Assembly: GCA_002269645.1 (NCBI GenBank)
Contig: NIVC01003746.1
Coordinates: 1 to 64,000, forward strand
Reading direction: 5' to 3'
From: Macrostomum lignano
Lineage: Eukaryota
DNA length: 64,000 nucleotides
A program made the translations under genes and the position numbers. The notes under the pieces are model-generated. The model did not search any database and was not told where the DNA came from. It saw nothing but the letters and a program-made list of their open reading frames with translations. Every line of letters begins with the position of its first letter. Position 1 is the stretch's first letter. This document shows positions 4,223 to 15,969 of the stretch, in pieces.

Positions 4223-7200
4223 ATGCAAAGTAGCCGGCCAACTGACCGCTGCTTCCTAGCGATTCTGCTTCTGTTCCTGTTTACAATGTCAGCTTGTAGT
4301 GGTAAGTTTATTCCTGACTTATTGGGGAGCTGTAGGTACTGTTGTTGGGGAGCTGTAGGGGTACTGTTGTTGGGGAGCTGTAGGGGGTACTGTTGTTGGG
4401 GAGCTGTAGGGGGTACTGTTGTTGGGGAGCTGTAGGGGGTACTGTTGTTGGGGAGCTGTAGGGGGTACTGTTGTTGGGGAGCTGTAGGGGGTACTGTTGT
4501 TGGGGAGCTGTAGGGGGTACTGTTGTTGGGGAGCTGTAGGGGGTACTGTTGTTGGGGAGCTGTAGGGGTACTGTTGTTGGGGAGCTGTAGGGGTACTGTT
4601 GTTGGGGAGCTGTAGGGGGTACTGTTGTTGGGGAGCTGTAGGGGTACTGTTGTTGGGGAGCTGTAGGGGGTACTGTTGTTGGGGAGCTGTAGGGGGTACT
4701 GTTGTTGGGGAGCTGTAGGGGTACTGTTGTTGGGGAGCTGTAGGGGGTACTGTTGTTGGGGAGCTGTAGGGGGTACTGTTGTTGGGGAGCTGTAGGGGGT
4801 ACTGTTGTTGGGGAGCTGTAGGGGGTACTGTTGTTGGGGAGCTGTAGGGGGTATTGTTGGGGAGCTGTAGGGGGTGCTGTTGGGCACTGCTGGGCTGTGT
4901 GCGCTTAATCTGAGCTTTGGCCTACGAGTGAAAGGAAGCATTCGGCAATTTCCTTTTTTACTCAGATGGCAAAATCGCGGTGCGGCAGGCTCAGATCGCT
5001 CAGTCCTGGCAGTCGAGCGTCTACACTGGTAACGAAGACTACTGCTTCATGATGCGGCCGAGATCGCTGGGCGACTGGAACTACTTCCACTCCGGAGAGG
5101 AGCCCGACGCCTCCGGCTATCAGTGGCTGCTGATAAAGCTGACCAAGCCTGCGAGACTGGTGGCCGTTACTGTGTTTGCCAGGCCTGGGGAATGTAATCC
5201 ATCTGTCTGTCTGTCTGTCTGTCTGTCTGTCTGTCTGTCTGTCTGTCTGTCTGTCTGTCTGTCTGTCTGTCTGTCTGTCTGTCTGTCTGTCTGTCTGTCT
5301 GTCTGTCTGTCTGTCTGTCTGTCTGTCTGTCTGTCTGTCTGTCTGTCTGTCTGTCTGTCTGTCTGTCTGTCTGTCTGTCTGTCTGTCTGTCTGTCTGTCT
5401 GTCTGTCTGTCTGTCTGTCTGTCTGTCTGTCTGTCTGTCTGTCTGTCTGTCTGTCTGTCTGTCTGTCTGTCTGTCTGTCTGTCTGTCTATCTATCTATCT
5501 ATCTATCTATCTATCTATTGACTTGCAGTGAAGCGCCGGGCGGTGGGCACAGAGGTGCTGCTGCTCGGTGAGCAGGTGCCGAACGGCCTGCTGCAGCCCG
5601 AAGCGAACTCCCGTTGTCTGGCCAGCCTGGCAGGGCTCTCGGCTGACGGAGCCACCAATGGAATTTTCCAGTGCGGTCGCGTCAGAGCTGATGATGCTGA
5701 AAGCGCGAAGCTGGACTTCGCCTGTCACCAGACTGACTGCGCCAGGGTAAAATGTTTAAAATTTTGAACTTGCTTGGACTTTGATACCGGTAGTATCAAA
5801 GTGTAATTGAAGATGCATACTTAAAAAACAATCAATACGGATTAACCATTGCAGTTGACTCGCTTCATACTGCTTAGACGGCTTGTGCGCGACCAAGCTG
5901 ATAAAATATTTAACTTTGTTGGACTGGAAATCGAGGAAAGTAAGTTAACTGTCTCATTGTGCAGCTGTTTGTGCTACATTTTACGAAACAGTAATTAGAT
6001 TTATTGCATGGCTAATTTTTCACTCTGATAACAGCTCACCTGCAGCCCAGACTGACTCGATTGTAATTAGCTGAGACTCTGATAACAGCTCACCTGCAGC
6101 CCAGACTGACTCGATTGTAATTAGCTGAGACTCTGATAACAGCTCACCTGCAGCCCAGACTGACCCGATTGTAATTAGCTGAGACTCTGATAACAGCTCA
6201 CCTGCAGCCCAGACTGACCCGATTGTAATTAGCTGAGACTCTGATAACAGCTCACCTGCAGTCCAGACTGACTCGATTGTAATTAGCTGAGACTCTGATA
6301 ACAGCTCACCTGCAGCCCAGACTGACTCGATTGTAATTAGCTGAGACTCTGATAACAGCTCACCTGCAGCCCAGACTGACCCGATTGTAATTAGCTGAGA
6401 CTCTGATAACAGCTCACCTGCAGTCCAGACTGACTCGATTGTAATTAGCTGAGACTCTGATAACAGCTCACCTGCAGCCCAGACTGACTCGATTGTAATT
6501 AGCTGAGACTCTGATAACAGCTCACCTGCAGCCCAGACTGACCCGATTGTAATTAGCTGAGACTCTGATAACAGCTCACCTGCAGTCCAGACTGACTCGA
6601 TTGTAATTAGCTGAGACTCTGATAACAGCTCACCTGCAGCCCAGACTGACTCGATTGTAATTAGCTGAGACTCTGATAACAGCTCACCTGCAGCCCAGAC
6701 TGACCCGATTGTAATTAGCTGAGACTCTGATAACAGCTCACCTGCAGCCCAGACTGACTCGATTGTAATTAGCTGAGACTCAGATAACAGCTCACCTGCA
6801 GTCCAGACTGACTCGATTGTAATTAGCTGAGACTCTGATAACAGCTCACCTGCAGCTTCAATATTGTCAATCATGACCCATCAGGCCAGTCATCAGAGTT
6901 CCTCACCTGCGAAATGAGAAGCGGCAAAGTTGGCGACTGCACTCGCAACGGCCTCTACCAGCAGAGGGCCGGCCGGGCGTCCCAGCTGGTCAAAGCCTGC
7001 TTGCCCTGCCAGCTGACTGTCCAGGATGAAGTGCCCAGCTGCCAGCTGATGCAGCCAGGCTCGCAGGATGTCCAGGATTTACGGGTGGTGAGTATAAGCT
7101 GCATTGTTTGCAGGCAATCTCAATTTAACGATTCTGCAGCAGATGGTGTCCTATGGGTCGGGGAGTGACCCAGGATTACTCCAAAGCTGTTTGTCAATCA

Positions 7201-15969: not shown

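Follow-up and report, generated by a model that had tools for sequence, protein, structure and literature searches.

What kind of surface receptor does a flatworm encode when a lectin-like head stands at one end of a membrane protein and paired tyrosine motifs stand at the other? The question is raised by a locus of Macrostomum lignano in contig NIVC01003746.1 (assembly GCA_002269645.1), of which positions 1 to 64,000 of the forward strand constitute the window analyzed here. On the plus strand at 4223-15969, an earlier note made from the sequence alone had read a gene for an inhibitory receptor, in which a lectin-like head and immunoglobulin (Ig)-like modules are joined to a cytoplasmic tail carrying an inhibitory motif of the immunoreceptor tyrosine-based type (ITIM) followed by a switch motif of the same type (ITSM). 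The gene is real and its coordinates are confirmed. The architecture of the receptor is, with high probability, as described. The proposed mode of action, dampening of signalling through a phosphatase of the SHP-2 type, is argued by analogy and as a whole is given a probability of about 0.35.

The gene was spliced by hand, by joining open reading segments at canonical GT/AG sites, which yielded 13 coding exons (Table 1) and a product of 804 residues. This product is identical (100%, over all 804 residues) to M. lignano PAA49974.1 (BOX15_Mlig012130g1), a database entry that carries the name "hypothetical protein". The annotation to which that entry belongs rests on RNA-seq reads assembled into transcripts with the genome as guide (StringTie/TACO/TBONE; PMC5730564), so that transcripts lend indirect support to the exon junctions and to exon 13 being used. 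The 12 exons and 797 residues of the initial model needed correction in these details; its start, its stop and its motif coordinates were exact. An alternative acceptor for exon 6 at 7174 (cccag/GAT), which is in frame and would give 827 residues, was dropped for its poor polypyrimidine tract, as the acceptor at 7243 (tttcag/CTG) reproduces the annotation exactly. The segment 7174-7242 would add 23 residues to the Cys-rich region; it is unused in the annotated transcript, and the acceptor could mark a minor isoform.

Hydropathy analysis finds two hydrophobic segments, at residues 7-32 and 656-683, in the places where a signal peptide and a transmembrane (TM) helix had been claimed. Small residues follow the N-terminal segment, as they do in a signal peptide, and the ectodomain holds all but one of the five N-x-S/T sequons. 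The sequence describes a predicted type I membrane protein whose cytoplasmic tail has 127 residues, in the order signal peptide, lectin-like head, Cys-rich stretch, three Ig-like modules, TM helix and disordered tail. Because the single sequence is silent in Pfam and the Protein Data Bank (PDB), where the sole phmmer match of the full protein is a ribosomal protein at a meaningless E=1.3, domain assignment relied on family profiles and structure prediction. The full-length AlphaFold2 (AF2) model is poor overall (predicted local distance difference test, pLDDT, of 53) and was used solely for its confidently modelled beta modules.

The relatives on which the profiles were built came from HMMER, run exhaustively over 1.84 billion representative proteins (E<=0.001), which returned only 16; a word-indexed homologue search, given either the single sequence or one of two family alignments, recovered almost nothing but the query cluster. 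All ten relatives that were looked up exactly are from M. lignano, and no orthologue from any other organism was found in the 1.84 billion proteins. The relatives are 30-42% identical to the query protein, except for a partial copy (P0005) at 98%. Three further annotated copies (Mlig034318g1/g3/g4) are 98-99% identical, and such near-identical gene copies are expected because the DV1 genome is duplicated. Five of the ten relatives looked up, plus three further cluster members, bear the UniProt name "Ig-like domain-containing protein". No paralogue was found by tblastn elsewhere in the window. From its sequences this is a multigene family, restricted to M. lignano as far as databases show. One of the copies, P0003 (Mlig034318g1), which is 99% identical and lies at another locus, is annotated with 676 residues, ends inside the TM helix (...IAVAVAG-HSCSPA) and has no tail; this may be a variant that is tail-less or secreted, or else an artefact of annotation or assembly.

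The head (residues 27-206) was represented by an alignment of 16 family heads (A3), the consensus of which reads WQSS..Y....CF......GQWDYFH....PD..GYQWLL.KL.......SV.V..R.....RA...E.LL....P.GL......C.......CG.......V.C........LLRK.V.N..DK.MNF...E.EE. Against all PDB sequences the A3 profile gives exactly two matches, both of them F-type lectins: striped-bass FBP32 (E=6.9e-6, both FBP32 domains) and the eel fucolectin AAA (E=0.087). An AF2 model of the head, built from A3 (pLDDT 74.6; predicted template modelling score, pTM, 0.78), has as its top Foldseek matches in the PDB the F-type lectin domain (FTLD) of lectinolysin (4gwj, 3le0, 3lek, 3lei), AAA (1k12) and FBP32 (3cqo), at E-values of 1e-4 to 5e-4 and TM-scores of 0.5-0.58. 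The next-closest folds are neuropilin b1, CBM32, the lectin domain of GnT-IVa, SUN and the muskelin discoidin domain, all in the galactose-binding-domain-like class. In the predicted structure the fold class is firm; assignment to the FTLD subtype is less so, because these other galactose-binding-domain-like folds score nearly equal. Among the paralogues there are sub-threshold Pfam matches to F5_F8_type_C in four and to F5_F8_type_C_2 in two. F-type lectins are thus nearest to the head by family profile and by predicted fold, as the proposal of a fucolectin-like head would have it, and as far as fold and remote homology go it is right to call the head a divergent F-type-lectin relative. The canonical fucose motif of FTLDs is H-X24-R-X-D-X4-(R/K), accompanied by the Ca2+ motif h2DGx (PMC5712786). 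In the HMMER alignment a stretch of the head aligns without gaps to AAA (VTITNRGDCCGERISGAEI), so that R99 corresponds to AAA R79 and R106 to AAA R86, and both arginines are kept across the family. Glycan binding by the head may reasonably be supposed.

Below the head, the stalk can be placed with similar means. In the full-length model the stretch 340-560 is built with confidence and entirely of beta structure (pLDDT 65-93), and Foldseek matches of the stalk include shark UrIg, VEGFR-1, SIRP-gamma, MAG, CD22, ICAM-5 and RAGE at E-values of 1e-7 to 1e-4. An iterative search inside the family showed that the module at 441-545 is present in 2 to more than 6 copies in paralogues; this second module is the best conserved of the family. 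An alignment of 14 modules has two invariant cysteines and the signature 'GNPEP..CWL ... C.V.Q.GL', and the profile made from the modules (A4) matches the nectin-4 C2-set domain (E=2.9e-5), titin Ig domains (E=1e-3 for M5, and 5e-3) and dozens of IgG constant domains. Run on the receptor itself, A4 delineates three modules, at 348-445, 441-545 and 547-642, each with a Cys pair, so that profile and Foldseek together bear out the three Ig-like modules originally proposed. The Pfam C2-set_2 cut-off (21 bits) is reached in two paralogues (P0015, 21.4 bits; P0009, 21.0 bits), with the query below it. A beta-sandwich fold, profile similarity and the Cys pair are all present, and the stalk modules are best described as C2-set-like Ig modules that belong to the Ig superfamily (IgSF) at the level of profile and predicted fold. 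Each Ig-like module is encoded by two exons, and every exon pair is bordered by phase-1 introns. The Cys-rich stretch (204-316) has the same two-exon arrangement and a faint 'SCQL.QPGS' trace of the F-strand signature; residues 207-320 were modelled without resolved structure. This stretch may be a degenerate fourth module.

The tail is where the proposed signalling function would reside. Against the consensus sequences [ILVS]-x-Y-x-x-[ILV] for an ITIM and T-x-Y-x-x-[VI] for an ITSM, it contains one match of each kind, VVYAQV around Y769 and TEYTEI around Y796; the two tyrosines are 27 residues apart, and TEYTEI is followed by VKSNA and the stop codon. Motifs, coordinates and spacing are exactly those first reported. 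The layout is that of a single-pass receptor in which, downstream of the TM helix (656-677), a proximal ITIM and a distal ITSM lie about 20-30 residues apart. Of 200,000 shuffles of the 127-residue tail, 21% contained an ITIM match, 2.8% an ITSM match and 0.5% the two together; 0.08% had both motifs in the same order and 15-35 residues apart. The ordered pair is unlikely to have arisen by chance in any one tail. AF2 gives the tail no secondary structure (pLDDT 24-32), and it is predicted to be disordered; the motifs would therefore be accessible. The preferences of SHP-2 SH2 domains fit V(-2)/A(+1)/V(+3) in VVYAQV and T(-2)/T(+1)/I(+3) in TEYTEI. TEYTEI is one residue off the TEYSEI of Siglec-7/-9, and VVYAQV is close to the TIYAQV switch motif of SLAM.

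Taken together, these features suggest a mechanism in which the head would bind a ligand, most likely a glycan. The ligand need not be fucose, since only two arginines of the fucose triad survive. Engagement or clustering by the ligand would lead a Src-family kinase to phosphorylate Y769 and Y796, the doubly phosphorylated tail (VVpYAQV, TEpYTEI) would dock the tandem SH2 domains of an SHP-2/Corkscrew orthologue, and the phosphatase would dephosphorylate nearby substrates, so that signalling is dampened. The parts of this scheme are not equally secure. That Y769 and Y796 are genuine phosphotyrosine docking sites is a tentative reading of the sequence, held at somewhat under even odds; that they feed an inhibitory SHP-2 route, which is argued from analogy with known receptors, is doubtful.

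A number of observations weigh against the inhibitory scheme, at both ends of the protein. At the head, Pfam finds no family anywhere in the full protein, even at E<=10. In the HMMER alignment, the fucose-contacting H52 of AAA corresponds to the family-conserved Pro73, with H68, a conceivable stand-in, five residues upstream, and AAA D81 corresponds to Gly101. No h2DGx Ca2+ motif is found between the WQSS and YFH segments, in the query or in the family consensus; the corresponding stretch of FBP32 reads NAIDGN. The alignments likewise show that the CC disulfide of FTLDs is not present in the head. By FTLD standards, therefore, fold and sequence homology are there, the fucose motif is incomplete and the Ca2+ motif is lacking. 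Altered or lost sugar binding is possible in F-type domains that deviate in motif, for example Drosophila CG9095 and some oyster isoforms (PMC5712786). Of the original claim of an ITIM/ITSM inhibitory receptor with a glycan-sensing head, the consensus, order and spacing of the motifs stand, and the glycan motif proves incomplete.

At the tail, the motif pair is seen only in copies 98-99% identical to the query, which are uninformative on constraint, and five other TM-bearing lineages of the family are without it. The TM-bearing paralogues P0010/21, P0015, P0018 and P0025 have unrelated tails. That of P0023 (...DEFYINSKLFRSRRLNGDVTEYLDIV..., TEYLDIV) has TEY-x-[DE]-IV in common with the query, its tyrosines being separated by 18 residues; that of P0006 (...VEFYVQLL) is a partial echo only. 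Neither alignment is better than those of shuffles (P0023 against P0001, p=0.14; P0006, p=0.77). The family thus keeps the head and the Ig modules and not the tails. A rate of 0.5% per tail, applied across thousands of single-pass proteins, leads one to expect some accidental pairs. Both motifs double as Y-x-x-hydrophobic sorting signals. Finally, a homologue of PTPN11 appears in a list of M. lignano transcripts (PMC5946080), the one indirect support for recruitment of a phosphatase of the SHP type, and the case for a true tandem-SH2 phosphatase in this animal rests on that gene-name list; a literature search on flatworm SHP2 gave nothing specific beyond this entry.

These same observations can be read as those of a protein for adhesion or recognition (cell-cell, gamete or microbe binding) that does not signal through tyrosines and whose motifs are accidental. 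Such a protein would need nothing more than the parts that are in fact conserved, the head and the Ig modules; P0003 is a copy of the gene without any tail; and the shuffles, with an ITIM in 21% and both motifs in 0.5%, make accidental cases expected across a proteome. F-type lectin repeats in oyster bindin, moreover, serve gamete recognition. An ordered and correctly spaced pair is nevertheless rare by chance (0.08%), each motif satisfies its six-residue consensus in full and has a favourable residue at +1, TEYLDIV stands at the C-terminus of another family member (P0023), and 127 disordered residues make a long tail for a mere structural anchor. The adhesion explanation is considered less likely than not, though only slightly behind the inhibitory scheme.

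Signalling could also be dispensed with if the tyrosines serve in sorting. The tail has three Y-x-x-hydrophobic motifs, with a juxtamembrane YRKL at Y685, eight residues past the TM helix, in addition to YAQV and YTEI, and all three might act as AP-2 signals in an endocytic or phagocytic lectin receptor that takes up glycan-bearing cargo. Sequences of the ITIM type overlap with the consensus for AP-2 mu2, endocytosis is a function of many lectin receptors, and the head is lectin-like. Sorting has no need of the V and T at the -2 positions, which match the SH2 consensus all the same, and this explanation is judged improbable. Sorting and phosphotyrosine docking are not mutually exclusive, and nothing in the present data distinguishes them. 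If the tyrosines are indeed docking sites, the output might still be of the opposite sign: in an activating or "switch" receptor, phosphorylated TEYTEI would recruit an SAP-like protein, a Src-family kinase, PI3K, Grb2 or Shc, and no phosphatase. The output of an ITSM can be activating or inhibitory depending on the adaptor (PMC8211107). The paralogue P0023 combines TEYLDI with EFYINS, a pY-x-N motif of the Grb2 type, and VVYAQV has the resemblance to the SLAM motif mentioned above. An ITIM and an ITSM about 25 residues apart are, on the other hand, the typical layout for a tandem-SH2 phosphatase, and to our knowledge SAP-family adaptors are not known outside vertebrates. A switch receptor is held to be quite improbable.

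Comparison with known receptors shows how far the resemblance extends. The CD33-related Siglecs (Siglec-7/-9) and PD-1 are, like the M. lignano protein, of type I with an N-terminal ligand-binding domain, a proximal ITIM and a terminal ITSM, and in the Siglecs, too, Ig modules form the stalk below the ligand-binding head. Their ITSMs read TEYSEI, TEYSEV and TEYATI, and their tyrosines are spaced by 18-25 residues, compared with 27 here. Neither phmmer against PDB sequences nor the exhaustive HMMER search gives a sequence match to any Siglec. The head is a jelly-roll and not a V-set Ig domain with a sialic-acid-binding Arg, which places the protein outside the Siglecs; CD22 and MAG are generic multi-Ig fold matches only. 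The Ig modules are atypical in that the first Cys directly precedes the conserved-Trp position, unlike those of the Siglecs and PD-1, and with PD-1, which is unrelated, the resemblance is in layout only. There being no homology, any likeness to these receptors is convergent, as the earlier note had supposed. PECAM-1, SIRP-alpha and nectin-type members of the IgSF share a multi-Ig ectodomain (SIRP-gamma and the nectin-4 C2-set are among the best matches of the stalk), but lack a lectin head, and the likeness is remote, at the level of fold and profile. In PECAM-1, which binds SHP-2, the ITIM and the ITSM are separated by 23 residues.

On the lectin side, AAA, FBP32 and the lectinolysin FTLD are closest to the head by profile and fold and share two arginines of the triad. 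The head differs from them in falling below Pfam thresholds and in being joined to Ig-like modules, and not to CCP or C-type lectin domains. In Drosophila Furrowed/CG9095 the domain is also carried on a single-pass membrane protein, and the triad of CG9095 also deviates (PMC5712786). No FTLD with an ITIM/ITSM tail, and no ITIM-bearing receptor from flatworms, is reported in the searchable literature, in which a full-text search for Mlig012130 found no paper. ITIM-bearing receptors of other invertebrates are known, among them oyster CgSiglec-1 (PMC5877582), amphioxus BbLcLRR, which binds SHIP1 and SHP1/2 (PMC8211107), and the allorecognition receptors linked to fuhc in Botryllus (PMC12582321). 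As in the present case, these are non-vertebrate surface proteins with ITIM or ITIM-like tails that are inhibitory or proposed to be so, and some belong to expanded, lineage-specific families. They differ in having Ig-only or leucine-rich-repeat ectodomains, in coming from other phyla and in having at least some experimental support, the M. lignano receptor being known from sequence alone. To present an inhibitory receptor of this layout as a novelty "in an invertebrate" was therefore an overstatement. The ITIM principle is not new among invertebrates; it is the combination of an F-type-lectin head with an ITIM/ITSM tail that is unreported in the searchable literature.

Very little is known of immune or self-recognition receptors in flatworms. 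Should the motifs be functional, ITIM/ITSM signalling of the SHP-2 kind would have been assembled independently, in a lophotrochozoan, on a glycan-binding head that is not an Ig domain, and M. lignano, being open to transgenesis and RNA interference, is an animal in which the idea is directly testable. Should they be accidental, an architecture (an FTLD-like head with C2-set-like Ig modules) has still been assigned to a "hypothetical protein", and the same architecture is gained for some 15 clusters of paralogues, either unnamed or bearing automatic domain-based UniProt names; Pfam misses it in the query and has weak or borderline matches in some paralogues. Across the family, tails range from ITIM+ITSM and pYxN+ITSM to tyrosine-poor or absent, and Ig modules number from three to at least six. 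A bolder and improbable reading, drawn by analogy with the KIR, LILR, Siglec and SIRP families and with the allorecognition families of Hydractinia and Botryllus, is that this may be a rapidly diversifying paired-receptor system in which the present protein would be the SHP-2-linked inhibitory arm for glycan-based recognition of self, microbe or mate. If that were true, the logic of vertebrate checkpoint receptors would have been invented independently on an F-type-lectin scaffold.

The locus has the character of a eukaryotic gene in base composition and tandem-repeat scans, with introns packed with satellites. Seven micro- or minisatellite arrays, collected with the exons and motifs in Table 1, occupy introns 1, 2, 4, 6, 7, 9 and 11. 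Of the M. lignano genome, 15% is simple and tandem repeats (PMC5730564), and introns filled with them are thus nothing unusual in this species. The gene had been said to be nearly invisible in the track of open reading frames (ORFs), and this is the case: only fragments of it appear as ORFs, with repeat-filled introns between. Three minus-strand ORFs (4198-4941, 6020-6874 and 12376-12807) were rejected as genes; they lie wholly inside tandem arrays and are repeat artefacts.

Table 1. Coding exons, tail motifs and intronic repeat arrays of the M. lignano receptor gene, in positions of the 64,000-nucleotide window.
Feature	Position	Strand	Content and basis
Exon 1	4223-4301	+	Start codon and putative signal peptide, residues 1-26; splice model, identity to PAA49974.1, hydrophobic segment
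Exon 2	4966-5193	+	F-type-lectin-like head, first part, residues 27-102, including R99
Exon 3	5529-5746	+	Lectin-like head, middle, residues 103-175; R106, conserved C132 and C151
Exon 4	5855-5939	+	Lectin-like head, end, residues 176-203, closing LEIEE
Exon 5	6885-7087	+	Cys-rich region, residues 204-271; low model confidence
Exon 6	7243-7378	+	Cys-rich region, remainder, residues 272-316
Exons 7 and 8	8841-9046, 11081-11255	+	Ig-like module 1, about residues 321-445; Cys365/Cys419
Exons 9 and 10	11337-11497, 12925-13060	+	Ig-like module 2, residues 441-545; Cys482/Cys521
Exons 11 and 12	13164-13300, 14400-14589	+	Ig-like module 3, residues 546-651; Cys577/Cys624
Exon 13	15509-15969	+	Predicted TM helix 15520-15585 (residues 656-677), 127-residue cytoplasmic tail, stop codon
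VVYAQV, ITIM-consensus match (Y769)	15853-15870	+	Sequence match, tail position
TEYTEI, ITSM-consensus match (Y796)	15934-15951	+	8 residues from the C-terminus
Intron 1 minisatellite	4322-4882		26 bp x 22
Intron 2 microsatellite	5202-5516		(TCTG) x 79
Intron 4 minisatellite	6022-6856		54 bp x 15.5
Intron 6 microsatellite	7458-8674		(TTAG) x 305
Intron 7 G-rich minisatellite	9105-10983		34 bp x 55.5, between the two module-1 exons
Intron 9 G-rich minisatellite	11584-12781		22 bp x 54, unit TTAGGGGTTTGGGGTATGAGAA
Intron 11 minisatellite	13378-14244		34 bp x 25.7

The GC skew of the plus strand is strongly positive (0.47-0.57) at 8000-14000, an effect of intronic minisatellites whose coding strand is rich in G. 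Two of the G-rich minisatellite units, GGGGAGGTGGGGAATCGGGG and TTAGGGGTTTGGGG, the latter with a telomere-like TTAGGG core, look capable of forming G-quadruplexes in the non-template strand or in the pre-mRNA. Intron 12 contains an inverted repeat with 63-nucleotide arms (14900-14962 and 14997-15059) that are 92% complementary and separated by a 34-nucleotide spacer; it could be an element resembling a miniature inverted-repeat transposable element (MITE), or a hairpin. A purine-rich, low-complexity stretch lies downstream of it, at about 15140-15300.

Elsewhere in the window, two long minus-strand ORFs at 19610-22035, downstream of the receptor gene, contain three RRM_1 stretches (E=3e-52) and a C-terminal MLLE domain (E=5e-28), and together look like a gene for a poly(A)-binding protein. 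On the plus strand at 33284-34762, an uninterrupted ORF of 492 residues with Neur_chan_LBD and Neur_chan_memb domains is apparently an intronless gene for a Cys-loop ligand-gated ion channel, unlike the 13-exon receptor gene. Long tandem arrays follow one another on both strands at 35126-43488 (20 bp x 117, 20 bp x 19, 56 bp x 9, 12/22 bp x 60-123 and 21 bp x 44), and as a consequence this region has many spurious long ORFs and weak Pfam matches, such as Baculo_PEP_C. A minus-strand ORF at 52742-54067 matches aminotransferase class I/II (E=6e-37) and partly overlaps a tandem array of 22 bp x 29 at 52869-53512.

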